The notes under the pieces were generated by a model. That model saw only the letters and a list, made by a program, of their open reading frames with translations, searched no databases and was not told the origin of the DNA. 40,309 nucleotides of DNA from Mobula birostris (Eukaryota): NCBI RefSeq assembly GCF_030028105.1, contig NC_092383.1:97115604-97155912 (forward strand), given 5' to 3'. Both the position numbers and the translations under genes were made by a program. Below are positions 1 to 31,020 of the stretch, piece by piece (within the stretch, counting starts at the first letter, position 1; each line of letters opens with the position of its first letter).

Positions 1-397
1 AGTGTCGGACGCTGATGATTTTTACAGCTTGGAAGGGCTTGTTTTGTGTGATGAATTGAAAAGTTGTGTTCCTGATGAGGTAAGGATACCCAGATGCAGA
101 GGACGCCGCTACCTTGCAGGGGTTTGATAAGAAAACAGACAAAATTGTTTTAACCCACGAGGTTGAGTTTATTCCAGAAAAGAGTTTGCCAGAGAATAGC
201 TGTGAGGCTCGGGGTGAGCTTGAATTTGAAACTGGGACAAGTGATGACAGCCCAGAAGAGGCAGCTGTTCCGATTGACTGTGTTCAGGTTGTGGAAGTAC
301 CTGTGAGTTCACAGGGTTCTGAACCTTGTGTTAAAGCTCAGTTAAAGTCTGAAGTGTTGAACAAGGAATTAGAAACAAGAAAGAACAAAAAAAGAGA

Positions 398-1078: not shown

Positions 1079-1276
1079 TTGGGCAGTCGAGGTCAGGTAA
1101 CCAAACATTTGGAAAGGCTCAAACAGATAAATAGAGGGATAGCTCAAGCGAAGCGGCCAGTGGAAAGTGGCCAGAGCGTGAGTGGGCCAGTGAAGGAGTG
1201 GAGCTTTGAGGCTTTGACTCGAGAGGCTTCGACGAGAAGAGGCCGAGGACAAGCTAGCTCGCAGTTAGTTTTTACA

Positions 1277-2218: not shown

Positions 2219-2349
2219 TTTGTGAGGGGGATGGGACCCAGAGTGATAGAGCAGTGAAAGAAGTGCATGGAGTAAAGCCAGATCTAACATACAGAGAGGC
2301 TTTGAGGAAAGAGAAGCAAAATAAACGGTGTAAAGACAGTAAGGTAGAA

Positions 2350-6754: not shown

Positions 6755-7330
6755 TTGATTGGGGGAAAATCCCTCTTGATTTGGTTGTGTAGAAATACAG
6801 CAGAAATAGACGTTAGTGTTGTGGAGTTTATGTTGGAACCAACCCCAGAAGCGTTGGATGATGCTATGAGGGTTGTGCGGTTGGGAATTGCTCAAAAGTT
6901 AAAACTAAAGGTGACCACTATAATGAGGAAAGCTCAGATGCAGATGATAATAGCCCAGCATTATATAGATAAGGGAACGTTTGATGAGGAGGCGTTAGAG
7001 TTGTTCGTGGAAGGTGAATCTGCTGAGGATGAGCTTCAGCTTCAGTTGGAAAAATTAAGAATGGAGCATGAATTGAAATTAAAACAATTCAAGAAAGAAG
7101 CTAGAGAGGCAGCAAGACACAGAGAAGAGGCAGGAAGACAGAGACAGCTCGAAAGGGAGAAATGCCAATGTGAAGATCATGTGGCAGGAAGACAGAGACA
7201 GTTTAAAAGGGAGAGGTGGCAGCAAAGAGGTTTAGTGTCGGACGCTGATGATTTTTACAGCTTGGAAGGGCTTGTTTTGTGTGATGAATTGAAAAGTTGT
7301 GTTCCTGATGAGGTAAGGATACCCAGATGC
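6755..7330 (+). pseudogene. Gypsy gag remnant with internal deletions
   Basis: Follows the PBS. Contains a coiled coil (ELQLQLEKLRMEHELKL) and DFYSLEGLVLCDELKSCVPDEV, which resembles the SCAN-related capsid segment of Gmr1-like gags. Confidence 0.65.
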
Positions 7331-7630
7331 AGAGGACGCCGCTACCTTGCAGGGGTTTGATAAGAAAACAGACAAAATTGTTTTAACCCACGAGGTTGAG
7401 TTTATTCCAGAAAAGAGTTTGCCAGAGAATAGCTGTGAGGCTCGGGGTGAGCTTGAATTTGAAACTGGGACAAGTGATGACAGCCCAGAAGAGGCAGCTG
7501 TTCCGATTGACTGTGTTCAGGTTGTGGAAGTACCTGTGAGTTCACAGGGTTCTGAACCTTGTGTTAAAGCTCAGTTAAAGTCTGAAGTGTTGAACAAGGA
7601 ATTAGAAACAAGAAAGAACAAAAAAAGAGA

Positions 7631-8311
7631 ATGGATGATTGTATTGATAGAGTGAGGAAGGCTAAATACCTTATTAAGATAGACCTGTTAAAAGGATGCT
7701 GGGGTGTTCCTTTAACAGAGAGGGCTAAAGAGATATCAGTATTTGTGACACCGTCTAGACTGTATGAGTACAATGTCTTACACTTCGAGATGAAAAGTGC
7801 AGCTGGGACATTTCAAAGAATGATCAATTCTGTGATTGGAGAGTTAGAGAGCACAGGGGTTTATATCAAAGATTTGGTGGTCTGGAATGTCACATGGGAA
7901 GAGCATATTGCAGTGGTAGAAAAACTGTTTGACAGACTTTCCAAGGCCAATCTTACTGTGAACCTCGCTAAAAGTGAGTTTGGCTATGACACAGTTACAT
8001 ATCTGGGTTATGTGGTGGGCCAAGGCCAGCTGGCTTCTGTACAGGCCAATGTTCAAGCTATTGCTGAGGTTCCTGTTCTGACTGGCAAGAAAACTTTGAG
8101 AAGGATTTTAGGAATGGTTGGGTATTACTGTAAGTGTTGTAAGAACTTTGCTGACATTGCTCTCTCCCTAACAAAACTCCTGGGGAAATGTGAAAGATTT
8201 GTATGGAATGACCTTTGCCAGGAAGCATTTGAACATTTGGAAACCATCCTGTGTTATCATCCTGTGCTCAAAGCACTTGATTTTTTCAAAGCCATTTTCT
8301 ATAGCAGCTGA
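7631..8311 (+). pseudogene. Gypsy RT remnant (copy 2)
   Basis: Translation is identical to 398-1078. Confidence 0.9.
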
Positions 8312-8312
8312 T

Positions 8313-11300
8313 TGGGCAGTCGAGGTCAGGTAACCAAACATTTGGAAAGGCTCAAACAGATAAATAGAGGGATAGCTCAAGCGAAGCGGCCAGTGGAAAG
8401 TGGCCAGAGCGTGAGTGGGCCAGTGAAGGAGTGGAGCTTTGAGGCTTTGACTCGAGAGGCTTCGACGAGAAGAGGCCGAGGACAAGCTAGCTCGCAGTTA
8501 GTTTTTACAATGTCTCCTGAGACAGTGATGTGCCTCTCATGTGAGATGTGGCAGTCTTGGGGGAACGCCCCTCTCCCGCAGATTCACATCTGCCAGAAGT
8601 GCATACGGCTGGGCGATCTGGAAGACCGTGTAAGGAATCTGGAGCAGCAGCTGGATGACCTTCGACTCATAAGGGAGAATGAGGCAGCCATAGATGAGAG
8701 CTACAGGGAGGTAGTCACACCTAGGCTGTCGGAAGCAGGTCGTTGGGTGACAGTCAGAGGGGGGAAAGCGAAGGTGAGCAGACAGGTAGAGCAGAGCACC
8801 CCTGTAGCCATTCCTCTGAATAATAAGTATACCATCCTGGATACTGTTGGTGGGGATGACCGACCAGGTGTGAGCCACGGTGGCAGGGCCTCCGGCACTG
8901 AGTCTGACCCTGTGGAGTAGAAGGGTGGGACAGAGAAGAGGAGAGCTGTCGTCATTGGAGACTCTATAGTCAGGGGAGCAGACAGGAGATTTTGTGGACA
9001 TGAGAAGGACACCCGCATGGTTTGTTGCCTCCCGGGTGCCAGGGTCCGGGATGTCTCTGACCGGGTGCACGACATTCTGGTGCGAGAGGGAAAGCAACCA
9101 GAAGTCGTGATACATGTTGGGACCAACGACATAGGCAGGAAGAGGGATGAGGTCCTGAAGTGTGAGTTTCGGGAACTAGGCAGAAGGCTGAAGAACAGGA
9201 CCTCAAGGGTGACGTTCTCAGGATTGCTGCCAGTGCTACGTGACAGAGATGGTAAGAATTGGAGGAGATGGCAGTTGAATGTGTGGCTGAGGAGTTGGTG
9301 CAGGGAGCAGGGTTTTTGATTTTTAGATCATTGGGATCTCTTCTGGGGAAGGTGGGGCCTGCACAGATTGGATGGGTTGCACCTGAACTCGAGGGGGAGC
9401 AATATCCTTGCAGGTAGGTTTGCTAGCATGGTTCGGGAGGGTTTAAACTAATTTGTGAGGGGGATGGGACCCAGAGTGATAGAGCAGTGAAAGAAGTGCA
9501 TGGAGTAAAGCCAGATCTAACATACAGAGAGGCTTTGAGGAAAGAGAAGCAAAATAAACGGTGTAAAGACAGTAAGGTAGAAGGGCTGAAATGTGTTTAC
9601 CTCAATGCAAGAAGCATCAGGAACAAAGGTGAGGAACTGACAGCTTGGATACATACATGGAATTATGATGTAGTGGCCATTACATAGACTTGGCTGGCAC
9701 CAGGGCAGGAATGGATTCTCAATATTCCTGGATTTCAGTGCTTTAAAAGGGATAGAGAGGGAGGAAAAAGGGGAGAAGGGGTGGCATTATTGGTCAGGGA
9801 TACTATTACAGCTACAGAAAGGGTGGGTAATGTAGCAGGATCCTCTTTTGAGTCAATATGGGTGGAAGTCAGGAACAGGAAGGGAGCAGTTGCTCTACTG
9901 GGGGTATTCTATAGGCCCCCTGGTAGCAGCAGAGATACAGAGGAGCAGATTGGGAGGCAGATTTTGGAAAGGTGCAAGAATAACAGGGTTGTTATCATGG
10001 GTGACTTTAACTTCCCTAATATTGATTGGCACCTGATTAGTTCCAAGGGTTTAGATGGGGCAGAATTTGTTAAGTGTGTCCAGGATGGATTCCTGTCACA
10101 GTATGTCGACAGGCTGACCAGGAGGAATGCCATACTAGATCTAGTACTAGGTAATGAACCAGGTCAGGTCACAGATCTCTCAGTGGGTGAGCATCTGGGG
10201 GACAGTGACCACCGCTCCCTGGCCTTCATAATTATCATGGAAAAGGATAGAATCAAAGAGGACAGGAAAATTTTTAACTGGGGAAAGGCAAATTATGAGG
10301 CTATAAGGCTAGAACTTGCGGGTGTGAATTGGGATGATGTTTTTGCAGGGAAATGTACTATGGACATGTGGTCGATGTTTAGAGATCTTTTGCGGGATGT
10401 AAGGATAAATTTGTCCCGGTGAGGAAGATAAAGAATGGTAGGGTGAAGGAACCATGGGTGACAAGTGAGGTGGAAAATCTAGTCAGGTGGAAGAAGGCAG
10501 CATACATGAGGTTTAGGAAGCAAGGATCAGATGGGTCTATTGAGGAATATAGAGAAGCAAGAAAGGAGCTTAAGAAGGGGCTGAGAAGAGCAAGAAGGGG
10601 GCATGAGAAGGCCTTGGTGACTAGGGTAAAGGAAAACCCCAAGGCATTTTTCAATTATGTGAAGGAAAAAAGGATGACAGGAGTGAAGGTAGGACCGATT
10701 AGAGATAAAGGTGGGAAGATGTGCCTGGAGGCTGTGGAAGTGAGCGAGGTCCTCAATGAATACTTCTCTTCGGTATTCACCAATGAGAGGGAAATTGATG
10801 ATGGTGAGGACAATATGAGTGAGGTTGATGTTCTGGAGCATGTTGATATTAAGAGAGAGGAGGTGTTGGAGTTGTTAAAATACATTAGGATAGATAAGTC
10901 CCCGGGGCCTGACGGAATATTCCCCAGGCTGCTCCATGAGGCGAGAGAAGAGATTGCTGAGCCTCTGGCTAGGATCTTTATGTCCTCATTGTCCACGGGA
11001 ATGGTACCGGAGGATTGGAGGGAGGCGAATGTTGTTCCCTTGTTCAAAAAAGGTAGTAGGGATAGTCTGGGTAATTATAGACCGGTAAGCCTTACGTCTG
11101 TGGTGGGAAAGCTGTTGGAAAAGACTCTTAGAGATAGGATCTATAGGCATTTAGAGAATCATGGCCTGATCAGGGACAGTCAGCATGGCTTTGTGAAGGG
11201 CAGATTGTGTCTAACAAGCCTGATAGAGTTCTTTGAGGAGGTGACCAGGCATATAGATGAAGGTAGTGCAGTGGATGTGATCTATATGGATTTTAGTAAG

Positions 11301-11967
11301 GCATTTGACAAGGTTCCACATGGTAGGCTTATTCAGAAAGTTAGAAGGCATGAGATCCAGGGAAGTTTGGCCAGGTGGATTCAGAATTGGCTTGCCTGCA
11401 GAAGGCAGAGGGTGGTGGTGGAGGGAGTACATTCAGATTGGAGGATTGTGACTAGTGGTGTCCCACAAGGATCTGTTCTGGGACCTCTACTTTTCGTGAT
11501 TTTTATTAACGACCAGGATGTCGGTGTAGAAGGGTGGGTTGGCAAGTTTGCAGATGACACAAAGGTTGGTGGTGCTGTAGATAGTGTAGAGGATTGTCAA
11601 CGATTGCAGAGAGACATTGATAGGATGCAGAAGTGGGCTGAGAAGTGACAGATGGAGTTCAACCCGGAGAAGTGTGAGGTGGTACACTTTGGAAGGACAA
11701 ACTCCAAGGCAGAGTACAAAGTAAATGGCAGGATACTTGGTAGTGTGGAGGAGCAGAGGGATCTCGGGGTACATGTCCACAGATCCCTGAAAGTTGCCTC
11801 ACAGGTGGATAGGGTAGTCAAGAAAGCTTATGGGGTGTTAGCTTTCATAAGTCAAGGATAGAGTTTAAGAGTCGCGATGTAATGATGCAGCTCTATAAAA
11901 CTCTGGTTAGGCCACACTTGGACTACTTTGTCCAGTTCTGGTCACCTCACTATAGGAAGGATGTGGA
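8313..11967 (+). mobile_element. CR1 LINE, duplicate copy, 3' end lost by deletion
   Basis: Matches 1080-4734 with the same stops and frameshift, and is fused directly to LTR sequence at 11968. Confidence 0.95.
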
Positions 11968-12327
11968 GATCCAACAACGAGAAGATCGACGGCGTCAGCT
12001 CACCTGAAGATTCAAATCTCTCCCTCTCTCTCTCCATCACTACTCAACTGAATACCACGAACTGAACTGAACTTTACTCATCATCATAAGACTGTATCTT
12101 CTTACCCCTAGACCTAAAGAAGCTTGGCTTATCATACATATATTTCTACACTTACTGATACTGTACTTACTTATACATATAACCATTGCTAACCTGATTG
12201 ATTTATTTACATTTATATCACTGTATTGCATAGTTACTAATAAATATTATTAGTTTATAGCAATACTGGATGCCAAAGTGTTTTCCATCTCTGTTGGCTC
12301 CTTATTCCCATCACAGGGTTTGTGACA
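11968..12327 (+). repeat. 3' portion of the terminal 3' LTR
   Basis: Roughly 90% similar by eye to 6349-6700. Ends TGTGACA, has AATAAA at 12239-12244, and is followed by non-PBS flanking DNA. Confidence 0.9.
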
Positions 12328-12614
12328 CTAGAAAATATCTGTGACCCCACCCCCACCCCCCCACCTCCCCACCTCCCCACCTGACCATTGATATCCAGCT
12401 GCAGGCTACAACTTCATTTCTGAGAGCCGGGTACAGAGAGTCTAGAGTCCTGATGAAGGGTCTCTGCATGAAACAACACTGACTTTGTGCTGTCTGTCTC
12501 ACGGGGCTGGGAACAACATGATGGGCCGCTTGGCTTCCTCTTTGGCTTTCCCAGGTCTGATTCCTCTTCCTATCACTGACCTCACCTACGGATTGTCTTG
12601 TCTTCTCTCCTCAG

Positions 12615-12935
12615 CTGGGACTGGGTCTCCCCCTACCACTGTGACCGGAACTCAGGGACAGTCAGTCTCCTTACCTTCTGGGATCCCAGTCAGACCGGAC
12701 GATGAGGTTCATTGGTTTCGGGTATCGCCCAGAATCAAGATTGTGAAGTACACGAATGAGAACATCAGCTACTTCAGTAATGAGCAGTACAAGAACAGGA
12801 TAACCTTTCATCCTGGGAACGTTAGTCTGGAAATCTATGACCTACGGAGAGAGGACTCTGGTGATTATGAGCTTATTTTTACTGCAGCAGGATCAGGAGC
12901 TGAAAATAAAACAACAGTGCGACTGGAGGTGTACG
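12615..12935 (+). CDS. Exon encoding an N-terminal V-set Ig domain without the B-F disulfide (CD2/SLAM type)
   Basis: Acceptor tcttctctcctcag, donor g|gtgagt, 321 nt, phase 1-1. Translation includes VTGTQGQSVSLP..VHWF..YKNRITFHPGNVSLEIYDLRREDSGDYELI..VRLEVY, with no Cys and three NxS/T sites. Confidence 0.93.
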
Positions 12936-14084
12936 GTGAGTGAGACCGGTCCCTGAAACACCCCTAATGGATGGGTGAGGGCAGATCCTATGTGTTTCCC
13001 TGTTTACTGAACCCCACTGACTACCCGTGTCCAGAGCTGGGCTCACGGTCCCAGTGTAGTGAGGTTGAGTCAGTGTGAGCTTGGAGGACACACACGCCAC
13101 ATCCACCAAGACTGAGACAGGAGCTGGAAGGGATCGAACCGACATTGGGGAATCTCATGTATCTGAGACGAAGGCAGCTCAGCACACATGGAGAATGGAC
13201 CTGGTGTGAATGGCCTGAACAGTCTGTATTTGTGGGTCACAGTTACACACTGTATCTCCAGTCAAAGGCCTGGTCTGTCATGTTCGGGGATCCCAGTTAT
13301 CCAGTCTCTTTCCCAGACTACTACTTGTTAATTGTCCAGACTGAGGTCTGAGCTCAGCAAGGTGTTTATTCCTCAGCCTTCATGCTGTGCTGTGCTGAGT
13401 GAGACCCTGCATATTCATTACACTGAATATAGTGTCCCAGTGAGTGACAGTACACGGACACAACAGCACACTCACACACAACAATATGGTTCCTGACTCA
13501 CTCTAACAGTAATATCACATTCACAATAATCTCACTCAGCAGCATCTGTCTGGGAAACCCTCTCTGCTTTGTTAGGGTGCATTGTGTAGTTAAGGAATAT
13601 ACAAATATTAATCTCACCACAGCCCATCTTCAGACATGAAGATGGATTGTAGATTGAATTTAAAATGCAGCTCTGAACACTAGTTTTCCTGTAGCTGTGG
13701 ACTGGAGTTGATTGCAAACCTGACAATTCTGATGAACATTCATTTTGTGTGTCTGGAGTGTGGGTGTGAACGACAAGGTAGGTGAAAAATATATGGAGGA
13801 CCAAGGAAGCATTGTTGGTACATTGTACCGGTACAATTATCCTGCATTTACCTTTGACCTTTAGCATGTCACAGTATTATGTAACATTGGGTCAAGAGGC
13901 TGTTTCTTCCAAGATTGTCTCAATATGATGCCTGTTTTTGGTGAATCACACATTTCTATATCCAACAGCTTTGGTGTCTCTCCGGTGACTTCACCTTACA
14001 ACATCCTCCATCCCAGTGTTAATGTTCACCATTTGAAGGAGGAGAACATCAGAAGATGAGAAATAGAAAACAGAATACAGAAAA

Positions 14085-14250
14085 TCATGAACATGGGTTG
14101 GAGACAGAGACCTCCTCTGGGATCGAGTAGAGGAAGAAAGGGATTGACGTTTACAAAATTGAGGGATATTGATAATATAATTGCAAGCAGGCTTTTTCCT
14201 CTGAGGTTGGGTCAGAGTAGAATTAGAGGTCATGGGGTAAGGGTGAAAGG
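14085..14250 (+). mobile_element. Old CR1 3' fragment
   Basis: Encodes LFPLRLGQSRIRGHGVRVKG, typical of the CR1 ORF2 C-terminus. Confidence 0.6.
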
Positions 14251-14286
14251 ACACACAAAAAGACAGTTCAATTGGCGGTACTGGGA
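14251..14286 (-). repeat. 36-bp remnant of the 3' LTR; PPT-like agaggtgagggtac at 14287-14300
   Basis: acacacaaaaagacagttcaa.tgg..gtactg matches 18644-18679. Confidence 0.8.
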
Positions 14287-14339
14287 GTACCCTCACCTCT
14301 ACGGACACCTCCTGGCATCACGACAGGTAGAGCTGGGTG

Positions 14340-14490
14340 CTGACGTCAAAAGTCCCTGAGGAGAGAGAGGTCCAGGATGTTATGGGTGGGAACCCAGCAC
14401 CTCTCCTCAGGACTGTAGCCCTCCCAGTCCACAAGTACTGGAGGCCTGCGACGAACATCCAGCTGTCGATGCACCGTGAAGGCCTCTGAC
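14340..14490 (-). pseudogene. Integrase-fused chromodomain remnant
   Basis: [44 protein letters not shown], with a frameshift or deletion. Confidence 0.85.
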
Positions 14491-17400
14491 CCATCGATGA
14501 GCTGCTGGGGAGGGGTGTTTTAGGGTCAGAACACAGGGGGTGGCTCATGAAAGGCTGGATGTGGGACACATGGAAGGTGGGATGAATGCAGTGGAGAGTG
14601 GAGGGGAGTTTGAGACGGACGGCGGCAGGGCTGATGACTTCAGCAATGGGAAAGGGGCCATTGAAGTGAGGGGTGAGCTTGCAGGAATTTACCTTGAGGG
14701 GCAGGTCTCGGGTTGAAAGCCACACACACAGTCCATCCTGGTAACGTGCGGCCTTGCAGCGATGGCAGTCAGCTTGATGCTTGATCCTAGCAGAGGCACG
14801 GAGAAGGGCAGAGTGAGTGTGCCTCCATGTTCACTGATAACAGCGGATGAATGCCTCAGCAGATGGAACGCCAACCTCCTCCTCCTGGGCAGGAAACAGT
14901 GGAGGTTGGTAACAAAGGCAGCACTCGAAGGGGGACAGACCAGTGGAAGAGGACGGATGAGAGTTTATGGCGTACTCGTCCCAGGGTAGCTGCTGACTCC
15001 ACGTGGAGGGGTTCTGGGAGGCCAGGCACCGCAATACAGTCTCCAGCTGTTGGTTTGCCCACTCGGTCTGGCCGTTGGTCTGTGGGTGGAATCCATACAA
15101 ACCACCGATGAAGGCCTGAGTACACTTGGTTCCAGGGTGACAGGATAACTGGGAACAATGACCCCACTGCAATACCTGTGAGCGGACAGAGCTGGGAACA
15201 TCAACACGATTAGTGGGGCATTGACTAGGGGCTGCCTTGATCTGTTGAGCAGCTTACACAATGGATTCAATGTCCCTTTGCACTGCACCCATGAGACAGT
15301 GAGCAGGGAGGATGACATCAGGTACCTCACGGGTCTTAGTGGAGGGGAATCTTCAGGAGAGGGAATCAGGTTTTCCATCCTTGGAATCGGGGCAGAAGGA
15401 CAGAGTAAAATTGAATCTTGAGAAAAACTGGGAGCAACAAGTTTGACGGGAGTTAAGATGCTTGGTGGTACAGATATATTCCAGATTCTTGTGATCAGTC
15501 CAGACTTAGAATGGCACCTTGGCTCCCTCCAGCCAATGCCTCCACTCCTCCAGAGCGAGCTTCACAGCCAGCAATTCCCGGTTTCCGACATCGTAATTCC
15601 GCTCCGTGGGAGTGAGGCGGTGAGAGAAGAATGTGCAGAGGTGTACCTTCTCATCCTTGGCCGAACGCTGAGAGAGAACAACTCCTACACCAATGTCAGA
15701 TGTGTCCACCTCCAGAATGAACTGCCGGTCGGTGTCGGGTTGAATCAGGATGGGGGCAGAGGAGAAACATTCATTCAGGTCAGAGAATGCTTTTTCAGTA
15801 GCAGGGGATCAGGTACTCTGACAGGCAATGATGCATGGGCAGTGAGGGGTACAGCCATTGTACTGTAATTTCTGATGAAGTGGCGATAGAAGTTAGTGAA
15901 ACCCAAAAAATGTTGCAACTCCTGACAAGTCAAAGGTTGGTTCCATTCGACCACCGCCTTGATATTCTGTTGGTCCATCTGAATGGAACCGCCTGGAATT
16001 ACATACCCCAGGAAGGAGACGGTATTGCGATGAAACTCACATTTCTCAGCCTTCACAAAGATCGATTCTCCAGAAGGGGCTGGAAAACACTGCAGATGTG
16101 ACCTGTGTGCTCAGCAAGGGTCTTAGAAAATAAATCAAAATGTTGTCGAGATACACAAAAACAAATTGGTTCAGCACGTCCCTGAGAACGTCATTTACCA
16201 GGGCTTGGAAGACGGCCAGGGCATTGGTGAGACCGAATGGCATAACCAGATACTCGTAATGGCCTGAGGTAGTGTTGAAGGCTCTCTTCCACTTGTCCAC
16301 TTTGTGCATGGGGACAAGATGGTCGGCGTTACGGAGATCAAGCTTGGTGAAAACTGAGTCTCCTTGCAGTAGTTCAAACACCGAGGTCATGAGTGGAAGA
16401 GGGAAACGGTTCTTAACAGTGACTTCATTCAGTCCCCGGTAATCAATGCATGGACGCAAGGAGCCGTCCTTCTTTTCAAGAAAGAGCAAACCGGCACCAG
16501 CAGGGGAGGAAGACGGCTGGATGATGCCTGCAGCCAGGGACTGTTGAATGTACTTATTCATGGCTTCTGTTTCAGGTACAGACAGGGAATACAGGCTCCC
16601 CTTGGGGAAGATGTGTCAGGCAAGGGGTCAGTGGCACAATCATATGGACGATGAGGCGGCAGGGAAGTGCCCGGGACTTGCTGAACACAGCCTTGAGGAG
16701 GGATGGCACTAAGGTCCGGAATTCCTCGAGGGGAATCTGGGCTTGGAGACAAGGGGATCTGAGCATGGCGGAGACAGTGGGAGTGACAGAATGGGCTCCA
16801 GCCTACAAACTTATGACTGACCCAGTCAATGTGGGGGTTGTGTTTAACTAACCAGGGATGTCCAGGACAATAGGAGTTTGAGGAGTCAATAACATAAAGG
16901 GTTAACTGTTCATGATCATTTCCGGATAAACTGAGACTCACTGGGGCCGTGACATGGGTGATGTCAACCGGTCTCTGACCTTTCAAGGCATTGTCCATCA
17001 ATGGTGACTGGAGAGCAGATGTGGATAATCCCCAATGGGCAGCCAACCCAGAATCAATAAAACACCCCTCCACACCAGAATTGACCAGGATGGAGACTGC
17101 TCGCTGTTGGGCGTCCCACTCCAGAGAAGCAGGTATGAGAGTGAGTGGCATCAAGGAGGGCCAGACAGGGGTCACGTTCACCAATACTCCTCGTCCTACT
17201 GGTGAGCACTTGGCTTTTACTGGACAGGTGGAGATGAAATGTCCTGCTGGGTCACAGTACAGACAGGAACGGGTGCTGATTTTCCTTTGTCTTTCAGTCG
17301 GCCTCAGGCGGGTACAGTCAACGTGCAGAGCCTCGGGCTCTGGAACGGGAATTGTAGATGAGGTCAAACAGCAGGGCAACGTAGACTGACGAGGAGCTTG

Positions 17401-18163
17401 GAACCCCTCGCTCTGCGGCGCTGCTGAAAGCGAACATCAATACGGATGGCCAGATTCGCCAGGGCTTCAAAGGTGGCAGGAAGCTCCTGGGTGACCAGCT
17501 CATCTTTGATGTCTTCGGAGAGGCCGTTCAGGAAGGTGTCATACTGTGCCTCCGAGCTCCAGCCACTGGAGGTGGAACTCTATGGCGTAATCTGACACAG
17601 ATCTGCACCCCTGATGCATGTGCAGCATTTCATGGGCAGCGTCTCTCCCATATTTGGAGTAATCAAACACTTCTCTCATCTCCTCAGAAAATAACTGAAA
17701 ACTATAGCAGAAAGGGGAGCCTGCCTCCCAGACAGCTGTTCCCTATTCTCTTGCCCGACCAGACAGTTGGGTGATGATGTAGGCTACCTTGGCTCGATCA
17801 GTCAGAAATGTTGTTGGTTGTAATTCAAAAACGTGGGTGCACTGGGAAAGTAAAGAGCGACAGGTACCGGGCTCACCTGAGAACCTTTCTGGAGGAGGCA
17901 GACAGGGCTTTTGGACAGGAGGAGCACGCGGGGACACAGAGGGTGGGGTGGAAGATACAGTGACAGAATGTTGATGGACGCTCTGGGGCAGCTGGAGTGA
18001 CTGAGTCTGGGCCACAAGAGGGGCTACATCAGCAGAAACCGACTCCACTGCCCTGAACACCGACTCCAGCTGGTTCTGGGGTCTCACCAGCATCACTCCC
18101 AGTTGTTCCAGGGCAGCTCTCAGACAACCAGGGTCTGTCGGTTCCATTCTGACCAGATTGTAC

Positions 18164-18679
18164 TGTCGAGACACTGGAGCAGGGATCCAATCACAGACCC
18201 AGTACTGTGCACACAGTGATATTATTGAGTTACAAATCCCAAGGTGCAAACAAGGTCAGTGTCAAAGTTCATGCATTGATCAAAAGTTCCAGAGAAATCC
18301 AAAAACCAGAATCAGCAAACAGGCAGAGTTGATATTCAGACAGACAGAGTACAGATACAAATGCTGGAAAGGCTCAGGAAAATTCACTGGCACAATCTGG
18401 CAACAAACAGGTGAAAACACAGGACTGAAATACACTGAGCAATAAACAGAGAGGCAGATGATAGGTTAGCACAATGAGACACAGGGGGCAGCAATACAGG
18501 TAATAATGAGAAACAGGTGAGAGACGGAGTACTCAGTAATACCGGGGCCAGGTAGAGCAGGAGCGGGGACAGGAACACATGGGGCATGAAAACAAACAAG
18601 AGCACATGGAAATACAAAACCACAGACTGACGGCTAGGGGGAAACACACAAAAAGACAGTTCAACTGGAAGTACTGACA
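18164..18679 (-). repeat. 5' LTR (516 bp) of the sushi-like element
   Basis: On the minus strand it starts TGTCAG and ends TCGACA, directly upstream of gag. Its start is duplicated at 14251-14286. Confidence 0.85.
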
Positions 18680-18904
18680 GAATCAGACAGTCGTCAAAGA
18701 AACCCCTTCAGCTGGTTAAACTGTTCTGAACATCAGCTCTATAAAAGGAGAGAGAGCCCCATGTACTGCATCAGATCCAGCTGGAGACGGGCCCTCGTCC
18801 ATTCAATGACCTCCACTGGAGCAACGTCAGAAATCAGAATCAGTGTGTGTCAGAGTGGGAGCAGGATGGAGAATCAAAGTGACAGCAACTCGAACTTCTG
18901 ACTC

Positions 18905-19460
18905 ACAATTGGCAAATGGAATTTAATGCAGACGAGTACGAAGCCTTAACCTTTGGGAACTAAACCAGGGTGGGACTTAAATGAGGAGCAGTCAGGCACT
19001 GAAGAGTGTAGTAGAATAGAGAGATCTGGGAATGGAAAACCATAATTTCTTGAAAATGGTGTCACAGGCAGATAGGGTCATTACAAAAAAGCTTTTGGCA
19101 CATTGGCCTTCATAAATCAATGTATTGAGTATAGGAGTTGGGATGTTATGTTGAAATTGTGCAAGACCTTGGAGAGGCCTAATTTGGAGTATTTGTGCAA
19201 TTCTGGTCACCTACATACAGGAAAAGTATCAATAAGATTGAAAGAGTGCAGAGTATCAGGACTTGAGGACCAGAGTTATATGGGAAGGTGGGGGAATTTC
19301 TTCACTCAGATGGTGGAACAAGGTGGAGGTTGAAGGGTTGGAACCAGGTTTGTTTTCAATGCCTAACAGAAATTTGGATAAATACTGGGAGGGATGTGGA
19401 AGGTGATGTCCAGATGTGTATCAATGGGACTAGGAATGGGCTAGATGGACTGAAGGGTTT
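18905..19460 (+). mobile_element. Old, diverged CR1 3' fragment
   Basis: Contains QMEFNA and AFINQCIEYRSWDVMLKLCKTLERPNLEY, plus a CR1-like 3' end. Confidence 0.7.
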
Positions 19461-20062
19461 GTTTTGACACTGCAATGCTCTATGGTTCAATGGAGTCTCA
19501 TTGAAAGGCCAGGAAGCATAGATGTTGAAGCACTGAATGGGGAGGCGAGTGGGGTAGAAGGAAACGGTCAGAGGAACCTAATGTTTGTTTTCGGTCGGAG
19601 AGGTTATGGGAACAGAGATGAAAGAAATGACACAGACTCAAGCCTTCATCATAATCTGGGCAGGCAGAGTGGAGATGGAGAGACTGACAGAATAGACTGG
19701 GCTGTGTCTTGTATTGGATCAGATTCAGGGCAGGTCAGGGCTGGGGCTCACTCAGGTTTCGAAGGGATGCTGGGACCACACACAGGATTAACTAACGACA
19801 TGGAAATGGAGAGAATTCCTGGAATAGAGAGCTATAAACAGGACATGGAGGAGAGTTTGTAGATGAGTGTGGGTAGTGCACGTGGGAACATCCTCCAGCA
19901 GCAAGTGACTGGTGAGGGAAGGGTTAAACCGTTGGGTAAAAATGAGGTGGGATTGGCTTGAAGTTCACTCTGGAGTGTTGGGGATGGGATGGGGGAGTTG
20001 GGGATCGAGGTGTCCACAAGGATCTCCTTTATTCATCTTTCATCTCTCCCTCACACCCTCAG

Positions 20063-20346
20063 AGCCCGTGTCAGGAGCAAACATCACAGTTCAGAACATC
20101 ACTGGGACTTGTAACCTCACCCTGACTGCTCCATGACCTCTGGCAACCCCACCAGATTCAGTTGGTGGAGAGGAGAAGTTACAGGAGACAACAGCAGCCA
20201 TCACATCTGGAAAGACAGAAAGACGATGCAGGTTGATTGCACAGCAGAGGTGGAGGATGTTGTGTACAGGTGTGAGGCCAGCAACCCCATCAGTGAGGAC
20301 ACCGCACAGGTCCGGCTGGGGGACGTCTGTAATCTGGACACACATC
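20063..20346 (+). pseudogene. Exon encoding a C2-set Ig domain with a CD2/SLAM-type extra cysteine pair; 1-bp deletion at ~20126
   Basis: Acceptor cacaccctcag, donor c|gtgagt. Translation EPVSGANITVQNITGTCNLTL[T]CSMTSGNPTRFSWWR..YRCEASNPISEDTAQVRLGDVC. The exon is 284 nt, one short of a phase 1-1 exon. Confidence 0.9.
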
Positions 20347-20748
20347 GTGAGTGTCGGAGGATGAAGTTGGGATTTAGTTATCTCCCCGTCCCAGGAGTGT
20401 GAGATGGGGCAGCACAGAGGAGCTTCAGTTTGTATCTATTCAGCACTCTGACACTGTTTGAGAGAATACTGTAGAGAACCATTTACTTTATCGGCAACCT
20501 TCATTTTTTGTATTTTATACTCAGGCCTCTGCTCATATTTGTCAGCACAGACTGGGTGAGGAACTGCAGTACATTTTGCAGAAGGTCCACACTGAATCAA
20601 CTGTGCACTGTTGCTGGAGGGAGGGAGTGATTCGATTGGAGGGAAGGATTATTTCGGATAGCTGAGGCATCGAGTGGTCAGGGAGGTGGAGGCTGAGCTT
20701 GAGGAGACTGTTTACTCATTGGGAAATATTTTCTCCTCTGCATTATAG

Positions 20749-20879
20749 CACCTAACACAACAGCAGCAGGAGATGCAGTGACCCTGGTGATCAGATTGTT
20801 CGAGATGGGGACCCTCCTGATCTTTGCTCTCACTGTGGTCCTCATGGTCACACGGAGGAGAAGATCTGAGGGAAGGGAA
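20749..20879 (+). CDS. Stalk/transmembrane exon
   Basis: Acceptor ttttctcctctgcattatag, phase 1. Translation PPNTTAAGDAVTLVIRLFEMGTLLIFALTVVLMVTRRRRSEGRE (hydrophobic helix plus basic stop-transfer). Donor gtaact at 20880. Confidence 0.85.
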
Positions 20880-21033
20880 GTAACTTCAGAGACTGTGTCG
20901 TTGAGTCTAGTATTTGGGGAGGGAGAGAGAGGGGGTGGGCAGGGGGGTGACAACAGGGGTGGGAGAGAGGGGTTAGATAAAGTGGGGAATGGTTTTAGTA
21001 CAGACCCTGTCACCTCTCCTTTCTGTCCCACAG

Positions 21034-21122
21034 ACCAAGCGGAGACGGGCATCATTTACACAAATCTTCAGAGGATGCAGAAGAATCGCAGTGTCTGGCA
21101 GCCCCCCAAGGGGAATGACAGG
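21034..21122 (+). CDS. Cytoplasmic exon 1 with ITIM (IIYTNL, 21051-21068)
   Basis: Acceptor ctctcctttctgtcccacag, donor agg|gtaatg (phase 0). Translation DQAETGIIYTNLQRMQKNRSVWQPPKGNDR. Confidence 0.8.
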
Positions 21123-21404
21123 GTAATGACAGACATGTTACCCCTGGAAAGAGGCCACTGTGGGTCACTCACCCTCCTTGGGGCAGACTGAACATAAGGC
21201 CTACATGTAATCTGCAGAATCCCACGATCAACCACAGGTCCCCGTCACCAGAGATCGTTCCAACCACCACTGCGGAACTCAGCAGCGCACACACGGGGGC
21301 ACAGCAAGATCCCACGTACCACTGAGGAGTCAATTGAAACTTTGCCTCAGTGATCTCCAGGCCTGGTCAGACAGATCGAACAGCAATTGTACACTCCACA
21401 TACA

Positions 21405-21824
21405 CACTGTTACTGGGTACACTGTTCCCACACACCCAGTCACTGGGGTACACCGTCCCCACACACCCGGTTACTGGGGTACACTGTCCCCACACACCCA
21501 ATTACTGCGTACACTGTCCCACACACCCAGTCACTGGGGTACACTGCCCCACACGCAGTCGCTATGGATCCCTGTCTCACACACCCAGTCACCGGGATAC
21601 ACAATCCCTCATTCTCCCAGTCACTGGGGTACCCTGTCCCCACACTCCCAGTCACTGGGGTACCCTGTCCCCACACTCCCAGTCACTGGGTTACCCTGTC
21701 CCCACACTCCCAGTCACTGGGGTACCCTGTCGCCACACTCCCAGTCACTGGGTTACCCTGTCCCCACACTCCCAGTCACTGGGGTACCCTGTCCCCACAC
21801 TCCCAGTCACTGGGTTACCCTGTC
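21405..21824. repeat. 31-bp minisatellite, ~13 units, consensus CCCAGTCACTGGGGTACCCTGTCCCCACACT
   Basis: The period is seen directly at 21616-21824; the 5' units are more diverged. Confidence 0.95.
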
Positions 21825-22079
21825 GCTGTACATGAGGTTATGCCCAGTAGTATGTGCATTTCTGATGATCAGTCGTGGTGTTAATATTTGTGTCAATGGG
21901 CAGTTAGTGAGTTCATTCCGAATGCACTGAGAGTGAGACCGTGTTGATGCTGGGTCAGTATGATTGTTTGTCAGTTGATTGGTGCTGACTGGGTGATCTG
22001 AGTTTCCATCATTGTGTGTCGCTTTGCATGTCCAGGTCTTTTGTGTCCATGTGTCACGTGTCGATGTGCCCAGTCTCAA

Positions 22080-22480
22080 TGTCTCCCCTCTCCAGAGTCC
22101 TTATCTCTGTCTCCAGTCTCCATGTCCTGTCACTAGGTCCTGGTCTATATCTCCCTGTTTCTGTGTCTTGTCTCCCGGTCCTGGTCTGTATCTCCTTGCT
22201 TCTGTGTCCTCGTCTAAATCTCCCTGCCTCTGTGTCCTCATCTGTATCTCCCTGTCCCAGGGTCCTGGTCTGTATCTCTCTGTCTCTTGGTCGTGCTCTG
22301 TATCTCCCTGCCCAGGGACCTAGACTGTATCTCCCTATCTCGATGTCCTGTCTCTGGCTCCCAGTCTGTATCTCCTTGTTTCTGTGTGCTGTCTCCAGGT
22401 CCTGTCTCTGTGTTCTGGTCTCTATCTCCCTGACTGGGTCCTGGACTCTATTTCCCTGTCTGTGTTTCCCAGTCTCCAAG
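22080..22480. repeat. Degenerate pyrimidine-rich tandem repeat (core ggtcctggtctgtatctccctg)
   Basis: The core motif recurs about ten times at irregular spacing. Confidence 0.75.
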
Positions 22481-22554
22481 AGTTCCTGACACAGTGTGTC
22501 TTGTCCCTGTTTCCCTTAATCACCCAGAGCTGACAGGTTCTGTTTCTTTTGTAG

Positions 22555-22671
22555 TTTGCTGGTCCGAAGGTCATTGCCGAGACTAATCCCACTGAGTATG
22601 CTGCAGTGATGCACCATGCCAGACCCCCCATGGACGGGCTGAGGACAGAACCCCCAGACAGTATCCTGTAG
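22555..22671 (+). CDS. Terminal cytoplasmic exon with ITSM (TEYAAV, 22591-22608) and stop codon
   Basis: Acceptor tctgtttcttttgtag; phase 0 matches the donor at 21122. Translation FAGPKVIAETNPTEYAAVMHHARPPMDGLRTEPPDSIL*. It is absent from the ORF track because it is short. Confidence 0.8.
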   Translation, partial: FAGPKVIAETNPTEYAAVMHHARPPMDGLRTEPPDSIL

Positions 22672-22963
22672 CCTAGGATGGATCGTCCCTCCCTCGGCAC
22701 TGGCACAAGGAGGGTACGGACTCTCTGGGAGATCTGCATGTGGGACGGTGGCTTGGAGATGCAGGTTTCCTCTGTGTCCCACTGTTGTGGTGAGGGGTGA
22801 GATCTATGGGACAACAGCATGGCTGCTGTTTGCTGCTGTGCTTTGTAAGTGTTGAATGTTAGTTCAATTATGGTCTCGAGTTTTGTCTGGTGGAAGAGAT
22901 TTTGTCAGAACGTTCCCCTGTAGAGTATCACCTTGATTAATCCTACTCAAACAGTAGTCAATA

Positions 22964-25409: not shown

Positions 25410-28400
25410 TGTTACACATCCCGTGAGCTTGATGTAATTACCTCGTAAGCATTATGTCATTATCTCGTGATGGTCATGATTTAATGGTCTCATGATAGCG
25501 GGGTGATGTGCTGTGACGTGATAGCATGCTCCAAACGGTATTTAAACATAGCCCGCCACTGTGACACAGTTCTCATTTTTACTTTTAGTGCAACGTTGTT
25601 GTTGCTGGTCGGATGTTTGTTGCACTTTTATTTTTCCTTTACCGTCCAGTGTCAGAGACTAAAGGCATTACCAGAGTTATCCAAGTTCAAAGGATTGGGT
25701 AAAGTTAATGTCGTTCAGCGTCTTGGGAATGATCGACCTTTTTGAATCTTTGTTCAGGAATTGTGGCATGCACATTTGAATGAAACTGCTGCAAGGTTGG
25801 GAAGATTTTGGAAAGGAGCAAAAATAACAGGGTTGTTCTCATGGGTGACTTTAACGTCCCTAATATTGATTGGCACCTGATTAGTTCCAAGGGTTTAGAT
25901 GGGGCAGAATTGGTTAATTGTGTCCAGGACGGATTCCTGTCACAGTATGTGGACAGGCCGACGAGGGGGAATGCCATACTAGATCTAGTACTAGGTAAGG
26001 AACCGGGTCAGGTCACAGATCTCTCAGGGAGTGAGCATCTGGGGGACAGTGACCACCGCTCCCTGGCCTTTAGCATTATCATGGAAAAGGGTAGAATCAG
26101 AGAGGACAGGAAAATTTTTAATTGGGGAAGGGCAAATTATGAGGCTATAAGGCTAGAACTTGTGGGCGTGAATTGGGATGATGTTTTTGCAGGGAAATGT
26201 ACTATGGACATATGGTTGATGTTTAGAGATCTCTTGCAGGATGTTAGGGATAAATTTGTCCCAGTGAGGAAGATAAAGAATAGTAGGGTGAAGTAACCAT
26301 GAGTGACAAGTGAGGTGGAAAATCTAGTCAGGTGGAAGAAGGCAGCATACATGAGGTTTAGGAAGCAAGGATCAGATGGGTCTATTGAGGAATATAGGGA
26401 AGCAAGAAAGAAGCTTAAGAAGGGGCTGAGAAGAGCAAGAAGGGGGCATGAGAAGGCCTTGGCGAGTAGGGTAAAGGAAAACCCCAAGGTATTCTTCAAT
26501 TACGTGAAGAAAAAAAGGATGACAGGAGCGAAGGTAGGACCGATTAGAGATAAAAGTGGGAAAATGTGCCTGGAGGCTGTGGAAGTGAGGGAGGTCTTCA
26601 ATGAATACTTCTCTTCAGTATTCACCAATGAGAGGGAACTTGATGATGGTGAGGACAAAATGAGTGAGGTTGATGTTCTGGAGCATGTTGATATTAAGGG
26701 AGAGGAGGTGTTGGAGTTGTTAAAATACATTAGGACGGATAAGTCCCCGGGGCCTGATGGAATATTCCCCAGGCTGCTCCACGAGGCGAGGGAAGAGACT
26801 GCTGAGCCTCTGGCTAGGAACTTTATGTCCTTGTTGTCCATGGGAATGGTACCGGAGGATTGGAGTGAGGTGAATGTTGTCCCCTTGTTCAAAAAAGGTA
26901 GTAGGGAGAGTCCGAGTAATTACAGACCAGTGAGCCTTACGTCTGTGGTGGGAAAGCTGTTGGAAAAGATTCTTAGAGATAGGATCTCTGGGCATTTAGA
27001 GAATCATGGTCTGATCAGGGACAGTCAGCATGGCTTTGTGAAGGGCAGATCATGTCTAACAAGCCTGATAGAGTTCTTTGAGGAGGTGACCAGGCATATA
27101 GATGACGGCAGTGCAGTGGATGTGATCTATATGGATTTTAGTTAGGCATTTGACAAGGTTCCACACAGCAGGCTAATTCAGAAAGTCAGAAGGCATAAGA
27201 TCTGGGGAAGTTTGGCCAGGTGGATTCAGAATTGGCTTGCCTGCAGAAGGCAGAGGGCGGTGGTGGAGGGAGTACATTCAGGTTGGAGGATTGTGACTTG
27301 TGCTGTCCCACAAGGATCTGTTCTGGGACCTCTACTTTTCGTGATTTTTATCAACGACCTAGATGTGGGGGGTAGAAGGGTGGGTTGGCAAGTTTGCAGA
27401 TGACACAAGGGTTGGTGGTGTTGTAGATAGTGTGGAGGATTGTTAAAGATTGCAGAGAGACATTGATAGGATGCAGAAGTGGGCTGAGAAGTGACAGATG
27501 GAGTTCAACCCGGAGAAGTGTGAGGTTGTACACTTTGGAAGGACAAACTCCAAGGCAGAGTACAAAGTAAATGGCAGGATACTTGGTAGTGTGGAGGAGC
27601 AGAGGGATCTGGGTGTACATGACCACAGATCCCTGAAAGTTGCCTCACAGGTGGACAGGGTAGTTAAGAAAGCTTATGATGTGTTAGCTTTCATAAGTCA
27701 AGGGATAGAGTTTAAGAGTCGCGATGTAATGATGCAGCTCTATAAAACTCTGGTTAGGCCACACTTGGAGTACTGTGTCCATTTCTGGTCACCTCACTAT
27801 AGGAAAGATGTGGAAACATTGGAAAGGGTACAGAGGAGATTTACCAGGATGCTGCCTGGTTTAGAGAGTATGCATTATGATCAGAGATTAAGGGAGCTAG
27901 GGCTTTACTTTTTGGAGTGAAGGAGGTTGAGCAGAGACATGATAGAGGTGTACAAGACATTAAGAGGAATAGATAGAGTGGACAGCCAGCGCCTCTTCCC
28001 CAGAGCACCACTGCTCAATACAAGAGGACATGGCTTTAAGGTATAAGGGGTGGGAAGTTCAAGGGGGATATTAGAGGAAGGTTTTTTACTCGGGGAGTGG
28101 TTGGTGCGTGGAATGCACTGCCTGAGTCAGTGGTGGAGACAGATACACTCGTAAAGTTTAAGCGACTACTAGACAGGTATATGGAAGAATTTAAGGTGGG
28201 GGCTTATAAGAGAGGCAGGGTTTGAGGTTCCACACAACATTGTGGGCCAAAGGGCCTGTACTGTGCAGTACTATTCTAAGGTAGGTTTGTGCAGTGACCA
28301 CCCTCCAGTCAAAAGGCTAGTTCCTTTATTTCTCCGTGACTTCTTCGGACAAGGCATCTCTCATCTATGATCAGCAGATTCGTCATTACTTCGAAGGAAT

Positions 28401-28915: not shown

Positions 28916-28920
28916 TTAAT

Positions 28921-29428
28921 AGAGAACATAGAACATAGAACAGTACAGCACAGTACAGGCCCTTCAGCCCACAATGTTGTGCCGACCATGAAACCCTGCC
29001 TCCCATATAACCCCCCAACTTAAATTCCCCCATATACCTGTCCAGTAGTCTCTTAAACTTCACTGGTGTATCTGCCTCCACCACTGACTCAGGCAGTGCA
29101 TTCCACTCACCAACCACTCTCTGAGTAAAAAACCTTCCTCTAATATCCCCCTTGAACTTCCCACCTCTTACCTTAAATTCATGCCCTCTTGTATTGAGCA
29201 GTGGTGCCCTGGGGAAGAGGCGCTGGCTATCCACTCTATCTATTCCTCTTATTATCTTGTACACCTCTATCATGTCTCCTCTCATCCTCCTTCTCTCCGA
29301 AGAGTAAAGCCCTAGCTCCCTTAATCTCGGATCATAATGCATACTTTCTAAACCAGGCTGCATCCTGGTAAATCTCCTCTGTACCCATTCCAATGCTTCC
29401 ACATCCTTCCTATAGTGAGGTGACAAAA
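28921..29428 (-). mobile_element. 5'-truncated CR1 of the same family as 1080-5218
   Basis: Reverse complement of 4710-5218, with a catagaa tail at 28921-28945. Confidence 0.92.
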
Positions 29429-30765
29429 CATGTGACATTCACCTCCAGACCCAACGCACGGCCTTTTCAATCGATCTGGCTCAGTGTTTAAATCATCCAA
29501 ACATCGCTCGACGACCAGGCCCTGTCACATCAACATGATGTAGCCTGGACCCTGCCACCATGTCTCAGCTCGTACCCGAGCTTTCAACGTTGGCCCAGTG
29601 CTAGATGGATCAGACATCGCTCTTGGCAGAGGTGGGCGGGCTCTGCACCCTCTCCACTCCAACTTTTCTCTGTTTTGCCAACCCCAACTCCATCTCAACC
29701 ACATCTCCACCTCGCTCCAACCATCTCTCCCCAACCACGTCTCCACCTCGCTCCAACTTCTCACACCTGCACGCCTCGACCCTCGAGTCAGCCTCGTCTT
29801 CCTTGTGTGCGGAGATCATTTACCACAATCACCTGACAAATAAGACAGCTGTCATTCTTTTCCATACCCTCATGTCTGGGAAACCCTCCCGTTCCAATGC
29901 AGAACAAACATTCCACAATTTATGGAACTTCATATGATGATAACTGTAGCACCCCATTTCTGTTGCCATCTCCTCCAAAAGCACAGGGATGTAGATCATT
30001 GTGTCCTTGGGATTTATTGACGTCAGCCTGTTTCAATGGACTTATTGAATCATACCTATTCCCATCAATTTTTCATTCTCATGTGACTCTTGGTTCTCTG
30101 ATACTTGCAGGTTTGATTTTGCCTTTACCCTTAAAACAGATACAAAGTAAATGTTTAACTCCTCTGTCCCACATCCTTGCCCCTGTCCCTGTGACTGATC
30201 CCCTATTCTGCTCCTTGTTTCCCGTCTCAGAATGTGTCACATCACCAGATTGGAATTAACTTCCTGATTCCACCCCCGATCTGTGAGCCGATGAATGTCC
30301 CTGTAGGGGAGAGGGTGTGTGACTCAGTGCCAGGTTCACACTGAAGCATTGCACACAGTCCCGGTCACAGTCTGGGCTGATCACAGTCCTGGGTCTGCTG
30401 CTCCTGGACCAGATTCAGACACGGTCTGGGCTGGGTCATACCTGGGTGTAGAAGGGAAACTGGGACCACTTACAATAGTGACAACAGATGTGGGCCTGGA
30501 GAGGATTGCTGGGAATCAAAGCCATAAACAGGGCACTGTGGATTTTTTATGGATGTTTGCGGGCAGTGGTCGGGGAAGTGTGAACTTACTCCAGCAACAA
30601 CTGCTGAAATGAAGGTTCAGGGAAGAGTTAATGTGATGGTTGAAATGAACTGGGACTGGCTTAAAGTCCACTTGGGACTATTGGGGATGGAATGCAGGAA
30701 TTGGGAATCGAGGTGTCCATGAGGATCTGCTTAACTCATCTTTCATTGTTCCTGCTCAACCTCAG

Positions 30766-31020
30766 ACCCTGTGTCAGGAACATACATCATGGTTTATTCA
30801 TTTTCATAGACACTGCCTGACCTTTTGAGATCCTACAGCATTTCGTGTGTGTTGCTCATGGTTCTGAACATTACCGGGACCTTTGACCTCACCTGGATCT
30901 GTTCCTTGACCTTGGGCGTCCCACCAGCTTCAGGTGGTGAAGGGGAGGAGAATCTGTGAGAGACTCCAGCATACACCACTTCTGGAATCATGGAGAGATG
31001 GAAGAAGTTCATCACACAGC
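30766..31020 (+). pseudogene. Decayed paralog of the C2 exon at 20063-20346
   Basis: The upstream intron 30565-30765 is similar to 19870-20062. Translation DPVSGTYIMV[insert]LNITGTFDLTWICSLTLG/PTSFRW*RG..SSIHHFW, with a frameshift, a stop, an insertion and a missing 3' half. Confidence 0.85.
30795..30855 (+). mobile_element. 61-bp Penelope-type tail insertion with 8-bp TSD TCATGGTT
   Basis: TSD at 30787-30794 and 30856-30863. The insert resembles catagatgctgcctgacc..cagcatt..gtgtgtgttgctc. Confidence 0.7.

Follow-up and report, generated by a model that had tools for sequence, protein, structure and literature searches.

A CD2/SLAM-like receptor gene of the ray Mobula birostris, disrupted as assembled, with an inhibitory-type and a switch tyrosine motif in a probable ray-specific receptor expansion

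Results

Exons of the receptor locus

We analysed a 40,309-nucleotide stretch of the Mobula birostris genome (RefSeq contig NC_092383.1, positions 97,115,604 to 97,155,912 of the forward strand; hereafter the window, with positions counted from its first letter). In this window, a first-pass annotation made from the letters alone had reconstructed a CD2/SLAM-family receptor from five exons lying among retroelements: a cysteine-free V (variable-type immunoglobulin) domain, a C2 immunoglobulin domain, a transmembrane segment, and a cytoplasmic tail carrying an inhibitory motif (ITIM) followed by a switch motif (ITSM), both of them tyrosine-based immunoreceptor motifs. Each of the five exons is real, and AG acceptors and GT donors lie at the proposed borders (12615-12935, 20063-20346, 20749-20879, 21034-21122, and 22555-22671). 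The V exon is indeed open and encodes no cysteine, and the tail motifs IIYTNL and TEYAAV are read in that order, with their tyrosines 36 residues apart. The exons of the receptor and the intron that bears on its tail are given below, the third exon being drawn to the end that paralog transcripts use.

12615 to 12935, plus strand: V-domain exon; 106 codons, phase 1 in and phase 1 out, 0 cysteine, open frame
20063 to 20346, plus strand: C2-domain exon; 284 nucleotides (nt), 1 base missing after 20125, TGA stop at 20134-20136
20749 to 20895, plus strand: stalk, transmembrane, and juxtamembrane exon; AVTLVIRLFEMGTLLIFALTVVLMV then TRRRRSEGREVTSET; without a canonical donor
20896 to 21033, plus strand: intron between the transmembrane exon and cytoplasmic exon 1; 138 nt, open in frame
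21034 to 21122, plus strand: cytoplasmic exon 1; IIYTNL at 21051-21068; phase 1 in, phase 0 out
22555 to 22671, plus strand: last coding exon; ITSM TEYAAV at 22591-22608; stop TAG at 22669-22671

The transmembrane exon encodes TRRRRSEGRE right after AVTLVIRLFEMGTLLIFALTVVLMV, and the 3' untranslated region extends past 22800 in paralog transcripts.

Breaks in the reading frame

When the five exons were concatenated as proposed, no single open frame resulted. The C2 exon is not divisible by 3 in length despite having phase-1 borders on both sides: the frame that enters from the V exon reads EPVSGANITVQNITGTCNLTLTAP and then runs into the TGA, while the remaining C2 domain (CSMTSGNPTRFSWW...YRCEASNP...DVCNLDTH, which starts CSMTSGNP...) sits in another frame. 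We compared this region with contigs from four sequencing runs carrying the same organism label, three of them RNA-type and one DNA; these were assembled contigs rather than raw reads. Contigs of all four runs carry an extra C behind 20125, which restores TCNLTLTCSMTSGNP, and the extra base is likewise present in a decayed C2 copy at 30666-31020. Since the DNA contig with the extra C is 99% identical to the window across 20022-20654 (633 nt, intron included), it represents the window locus or a very recent copy of this locus. The cysteines C162, C168, C216, and C235 are invariant or nearly so in the family alignment, and the window supplies all four only if the one-base gap at 20125 is bridged. 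The TC..C..C..C pattern that the first-pass annotation assigned to the C2 domain is therefore found once one base is added after 20125, but not in the sequence as assembled. In the ray family the spacing is C-x5-C, compared with C-x6-C in the alignment to a CD48/CD2 chimera.

A second break lies at the end of the transmembrane exon. When delimited at 20879, this exon ends in phase 0, while the IIYTNL frame of 21034-21122 needs phase 1; the 20879/21034 junction gives TKRRRASFTQIF... rather than IIYTNL, and the proposed donor at 20880 (GTAACT) does not preserve the frame. In paralog transcripts the exon extends ~19 nt beyond the proposed end: they align to 20895 and then reach 21032/34 via three extra bases, and an exon running to 20895 plus AAG ends in phase 1 and continues as ...EVTSGTEDQAETGIIYTDL. 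The proposed junction was thus misplaced. From the C-termini of paralog read-through isoforms (TEGKWI, TEGEWI, TEGKSI, or TESKWM), the paralog exon can be deduced to end in ...ACTGAAG/GTAAG, with the slash marking the splice site. At the corresponding position, the window reads ACTG TGTCGTTGAG, and a DNA contig from run X1 matches it without a difference from 20803 to 20965. Since this contig is independent of the assembly and the paralogs imply GTAAG, as judged from their transcript contigs and read-through isoforms, the canonical donor of the transmembrane exon is truly absent from the window copy.

Only two in-frame alternatives are left to the window copy, a weak donor at 20904/20905 and retention of the 138-nt intron. 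The latter is G-rich and free of stops (the open reading frame (ORF) at 20778-21191 runs through it), and its retention would insert 46 codons while keeping IIYTNL in frame. None of the contigs from the three RNA-type runs covers 20910-21005. Joining the 20880 or the 20895 donor to the third AG (21043-44) would also be in frame, but this route skips two better-placed AGs and is unlikely.

A leader exon of the family type (MNTRHLLISCWLTLCASL) was also not found in the window, either by comparing all six frames with four family signal-peptide sequences, where the scores equalled those of shuffled sequence, or by regular expression and tblastn. The 12.6 kb upstream of the V exon are filled with retroelement sequence, and the whole gene of P0161, the closest relative described below, spans only 14.7 kb. 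Because of the C2 deletion, the missing GTAAG donor, and the lack of a leader within 12.6 kb, the window copy as assembled cannot make the reconstructed protein.

Family assignment

The V exon matched the Pfam V-set domain (E=3.5e-10) and Receptor_2B4 (22.1 bits, cutoff 21), while Pfam searches with the small exons gave nothing useful. Searched alone against PDB sequences, the V exon matched CD48, 2B4, SLAMF5, and SLAMF6, with CD48, 2B4, and SLAMF5 being the best. Its V-set domain lacks the canonical B-F disulfide, having DSGDYEL at the place of Y-x-C. A profile built from 30 family members matched the CD48/CD2 chimera (5e-18), SLAMF6 (1e-16), and CD2 (9e-16) among PDB sequences, with CEA (5e-17) and CEACAM1 (9e-17) scoring close to CD48 and SLAMF6. 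The AlphaFold model of the closest homolog has a predicted local distance difference test (pLDDT) value of ~90 over the ectodomain, and its template modelling (TM) scores against PDB structures were 0.76 for CD48, 0.76-0.77 for CD2, up to 0.78 for NTB-A, and 0.75 for CD58 (0.72-0.78 for the CD2 family overall), compared with 0.66 for CEACAM1b (rank 41) and 0.61 for CAR. Among Swiss-Prot models, SLAMF1, 5, 7, and 6 ranked on top, interleaved with CAR/CLMP.

Since the CEA and CEACAM1 profile E-values are near those of CD48 and SLAMF6, the fold searches place CAR and CLMP high in their rankings, and RefSeq names a few family members CEACAM5-like or HEPACAM2-like, we considered whether the family could consist of CEACAM-like or CTX/CAR-like V-C2 adhesion receptors rather than CD2/SLAM members. 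The whole-ectodomain TM scores, however, place CD48, CD2, NTB-A, and CD58 at the top, CTX/CAR V domains retain the disulfide that the ray V domain lacks, four cysteines are conserved in the ray C2 domain, the tail ITSMs sit on separate exons, and most RefSeq names are SLAM, CD48, or Ly-9, so that we regard this alternative as very improbable. CEACAM1-L combines a disulfide-less N-terminal V domain and C2 domains with a tail bearing an ITIM and an ITSM-like motif, and it thus resembles the ray family in layout, with a close family profile score; the ray family differs from it in fold (0.66 vs 0.76-0.78), in its four conserved C2 cysteines, and in a consensus tail that is a double ITSM. SLAMF1, SLAMF5/CD84, SLAMF6/NTB-A, and SLAMF7 share with the ray family the disulfide-less V domain, the C2 domain, the transmembrane segment, and a tail with TxYxxV/I motifs, and they are its best fold and sequence matches, at a sequence identity of ~20%. 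Taken together, the Pfam hits, the PDB sequence and fold matches, and the names of the homologs point to membership in the CD2/SLAM family, as the first-pass annotation had supposed, by a modest margin over CEACAM and CTX-type receptors.

Relatives and phylogeny

A search of 1.8 billion representative proteins returned 389 relatives. The 76 proteins with E<=1e-10 came nearly all from rays, with a few from sharks, and most of them bear RefSeq names of the type CD48 antigen-like, SLAM family member 5/8/9-like, or Ly-9-like. The guess that the host is a cartilaginous fish was borne out, since it is a ray, the close homologs are all batoid, and the closest comes from Mobula birostris itself. Using a full-length window query with X at the frameshift and the transmembrane exon extended to 20895, the best match was P0161, an M. 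birostris "CD48 antigen-like" protein (86.5% identity over 318 amino acids). P0161, P0160, and the Hypanus sabinus "SLAM family member 8-like" protein P0154 have the same exon and domain order as the window (86.5%, 81%, and 75% identity, respectively, over ~310 amino acids), and their tails likewise read ETGIIYT(D/N)LQ and then TEYAAV, with the tyrosines 36 residues apart. While the models of these three are intact and the P0160 type at least is transcribed, the window copy has the frameshift, no canonical donor of the transmembrane exon, and no leader. Substitutions private to the window relative to these three include N for D in IIYTNL and an Arg and a Glu in the transmembrane helix.

Both of these charged residues lie within the helix at 20778-20870 (LVIRLFEMG). 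At nearby transmembrane positions, P0156 has an Arg, P0162 has two, and P0159 has a Glu, while P0161 has neither.

Many of the paralogs share one 99.8-Mb M. birostris record, and the window contains no conserved flanking genes. In the tree, the window gene is sister to P0161 with support of 85/86, which is under the tree's own 95/80 threshold; the two fall within a Mobula clade (100/98) that lies inside a myliobatiform clade of Mobula, Hypanus, and Hemitrygon sequences (100/100). The window copy keeps 40 of the 41 family-conserved residues, and its terminal branch (0.075) is about as short as that of P0161 (0.062), so any loss of function would be recent.

A literature search found no dedicated paper on SLAM/CD2-family receptors in cartilaginous fish, and a bamboo-shark single-cell paper mentions SLAM in a reference only. 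Intact members of the family are already computer-predicted and named in several ray genomes, those of manta and stingray among them. The earlier description of the receptor as uncharacterised therefore holds at the experimental level, as far as this search reaches, but not for genome annotation.

Transcripts and the state of the window copy

Spliced contigs from the three RNA-type runs revealed how close copies of these exons are joined. In a 416-nt contig of run X12, 12801-12933 is joined directly to 20062-20342, and a joint of the same run from 20343 to 20749, with three mismatching letters between, corresponds to 20346/20749. A 1330-nt contig of run X17 comprises 20062-20342, 20815-20895, 21032-21121, and 22554-22800, contains the GT..AG joint 21122/22555, and continues for 480 nt past the compared stretch after 22800. 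The predicted junctions 12935/20063, 20346/20749, and 21122/22555 are accordingly used in transcript contigs with 92-97% identity to the window: the V exon end at 12933-35 is joined to 20062 in the transcript contig of a 92% identical copy, and a transcript with 97.5% identity in the C2 exon has splice joints on either side of it. Since the identity of the spliced contigs to the window is only 92-97.5%, they derive from paralogs or divergent alleles rather than from the window copy; one of them encodes the P0160 tail (IIYTDLQWVKKNHS) exactly. No sign of transcription of the window copy itself was seen in the RNA-type contigs, although such contigs are weak evidence for absence. The share of exact V-exon 31-mers was 0.65-0.73 in DNA runs vs 0.12-0.19 in RNA-type runs.

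Most likely, the window copy is a paralog that was disabled or crippled recently and may be a null allele; its coding sequence is otherwise well preserved, and the frameshift itself may be an assembly error. That this copy is defective, having no leader, no proper donor of the transmembrane exon, and possibly a frameshift, seems to us probable, and we hold it likely, as one claim with this defect, that the gene is one paralog of a large, ray-specific, tandemly expanded cluster of CD2/SLAM-like receptors. Several points weigh against this view. The one-base deletion was seen in none of the DNA or RNA contigs compared and could be an assembly error or confined to a single haplotype; the 138-nt intron contains no in-frame stop and the donor at 20904/20905 is phase-compatible, if weak, so a tailed protein may be produced from the window copy by either route; the leader exon could sit upstream beyond the window; the failure to detect the exact window copy in RNA comes from assembled contigs and is weak; and the binding partners suggested below for the motifs would follow from consensus rules alone.

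Some of these points would fit a window copy that works fully, with the frameshift being an assembly or consensus error, the leader lying upstream of the window, and the tail being reached through a weak or non-canonical donor or a kept 138-nt intron. The extra C that all contigs compared carry behind 20125, the 40 intact conserved residues, the branch that is not long, the in-frame intron, and the 97.5% identical C2-exon transcript spliced at both ends are consistent with such a copy. However, an independent DNA contig matches the donor-less region exactly, so that this feature is no assembly error; none of the RNA contigs spans the intron or is spliced at a window-type donor; the RNA-type runs contain few exact V-exon words relative to the DNA runs; and no leader occurs in 12.6 kb, whereas the whole P0161 gene spans only 14.7 kb. 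We therefore consider a working copy possible but unlikely, and a recently disabled or crippled paralog the better account.

Origin of the tail motifs

The consensus sequences of the two motifs are S/I/V/LxYxxI/V/L for the ITIM and TxYxxV/I for the ITSM, and at least 32 human receptors carry tandem ITIMs or ITSMs (PMC8631942). By the criterion that we used for a cytoplasmic ITSM, proximal or distal (TxYxxV/I/L; PMC3958483), the distal TEYAAV fits, while the Ile at -2 sets the proximal IIYTNL outside it. A first motif that breaks the ITSM rule has a precedent in mouse SLAMF7, whose ADYDTI behaves differently and fails to bind EAT-2 (PMC3958483).

In all 18 family members with two motifs, the tyrosine spacing is 36 and the distal motif is TxYxxV, with TEYAAV itself kept in 10. 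The proximal motif is T-type in 12 of the 18 (TIYAQV, TVYANI, TEYAVV, and others) and I-type in the other 6. Where the window has its proximal motif, P0161, P0160, and P0154 read ETGIIYTDLQ, and every full-length member of the Mobula-Hypanus-Hemitrygon clade combines IIYT[D/N]L with TEYAAV, while the sister clade combines TVYANI, TVYADI, or IVYADI with TEYAAV or TVYAAV. This distribution of I-type and T-type motifs in the tree indicates that the proximal ITIM is a derived form of the first ITSM in a SLAM-type double-ITSM tail. With Ile at -2 and Leu at +3, the proximal motif of the ray clade is unlike those of mammalian SLAM receptors with two ITSMs, relative to which the ray family represents an independent large expansion. 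The window copy and P0158 read YTNL, while P0160, P0161, and P0154 read YTDL; YTNL fits pYxN, the Grb2 rule. The tail of an ITIM-type motif plus an ITSM is real, and intact paralogs have kept it.

The first-pass annotation had read this tail as the PD-1 arrangement, on what could be an intact, lineage-specific checkpoint receptor that recruits SHP-1/2 or SAP/EAT-2. PD-1 and BTLA do have an ITIM followed by an ITSM, TEYAAV resembles the PD-1 ITSM quoted there, and by analogy bivalent SHP-1/2 binding is plausible for the ray tail; the motif pair is also conserved across Mobula and Hypanus. However, the locus is not intact, and the ectodomain consists of V plus C2 without a V disulfide, unlike PD-1, which has a single V domain that keeps the canonical disulfide. 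Both motifs match the published ITIM and ITSM consensus, but the tyrosine spacing is 36 residues rather than the 25 of PD-1 and BTLA (PMC8631942). Moreover, the double-ITSM tails found within this ray family are homologs of the window tail, and the PD-1/BTLA and ray-family tails have different evolutionary origins. An intact checkpoint receptor of the PD-1 type is thus doubtful, and the analogy is weak; a SLAM-type double-ITSM tail in which the first Thr has been replaced by Ile describes the ray tail better.

Retroelements, repeats, and a relic exon

Two further features of the window are given below.

14318 to 18249, minus strand: decayed Ty3/gypsy-type long terminal repeat (LTR) retroelement inside the 7.1-kb V-to-C2 intron
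30666 to 31020, plus strand: decayed second C2 exon copy with upstream intron; ~70-nt interruption, truncated

Within 14318-18249, the Pfam domains DUF4939 (gag-like), zinc knuckle, RVT_1, and SH3_Tf2-1 lie on separate broken ORFs. The relic at 30666-31020 aligned with 19963-20212 in blastn (79% over 124 nt and 73% over 128 nt). It includes 100 nt of the upstream intron and is the remnant of another paralog, with V, transmembrane, and tail exons absent nearby.

Upstream of the V exon, a 4.7-kb retroelement block occurs twice (1-4734 and 7234-11967) with 1 difference in 4734 bases (99.98%) and a period of 7233 bp; the block was either duplicated in tandem very recently or doubled falsely by the assembly. 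The block contains an LTR-type reverse transcriptase fragment together with the endonuclease and reverse transcriptase of a long interspersed nuclear element, and older copies of it occupy 25800-28278 (93%) and, in inverted orientation, 28920-29437. A retroelement ORF at 6806-7024 is 87% identical to the N-termini of the M. birostris RefSeq models P0159 and P0162, which have no signal peptide and join a transposon-derived first exon to the V exon; several paralogs therefore have this element upstream of their V exon. Immediately upstream of the V exon, 12000-12520 is a high-copy repeat, with very high summed contig depth in DNA and RNA-type runs (thousands to hundreds of thousands). The intron between the cytoplasmic exons contains a 31-bp tandem repeat (13.4 copies, 83% matches) as well as arrays of 21-28 bp repeats (21415-21824 and 22143-22465), and the tandem repeats at these two positions give rise to several long spurious ORFs.

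Discussion

The intact paralogs of the window gene would be receptors with a V domain that has no disulfide, a C2 domain with four cysteines, a single transmembrane helix, and a SLAM-type tail in which each tyrosine motif occupies its own small exon. In the Mobula/Hypanus clade, the membrane-proximal ITSM (TxYxxV/I) appears to have become the ITIM-type IIYT[D/N]L, while the distal TEYAAV was kept. Upon engagement of the ectodomain, Src-family kinases would be expected to phosphorylate both tyrosines. Going by the consensus rules, the proximal motif, which has no Thr at -2, would not take SAP or EAT-2 and would favour SHP-1 or SHP-2, whereas the distal ITSM could take either SHP-2 or SAP/EAT-2. 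The net effect in the intact paralogs may be a bias towards inhibition.

A more far-reaching scenario, which we put forward as speculative and rather improbable as a whole, is that one myliobatiform SLAM clade converted its SAP-type proximal switch into an ITIM and thereby gave rise to SAP-independent, SHP-recruiting inhibitory receptors. These would belong to a paired-receptor cluster together with short-tailed paralogs and paralogs with a charged transmembrane segment, and the window copy would then represent a segregating allele of such a gene, either null or altered in its splicing.

The practical value of the window locus is corrective, and the genes worth study are the intact paralogs that have already been predicted. 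Rays appear to have their own large expansion of CD2/SLAM-type receptors, within which a switch motif seems to have turned into an inhibitory motif at a fixed 36-residue spacing. This expansion may thus offer a natural experiment in how SLAM receptors shift from SAP-dependent switching to plain inhibition.

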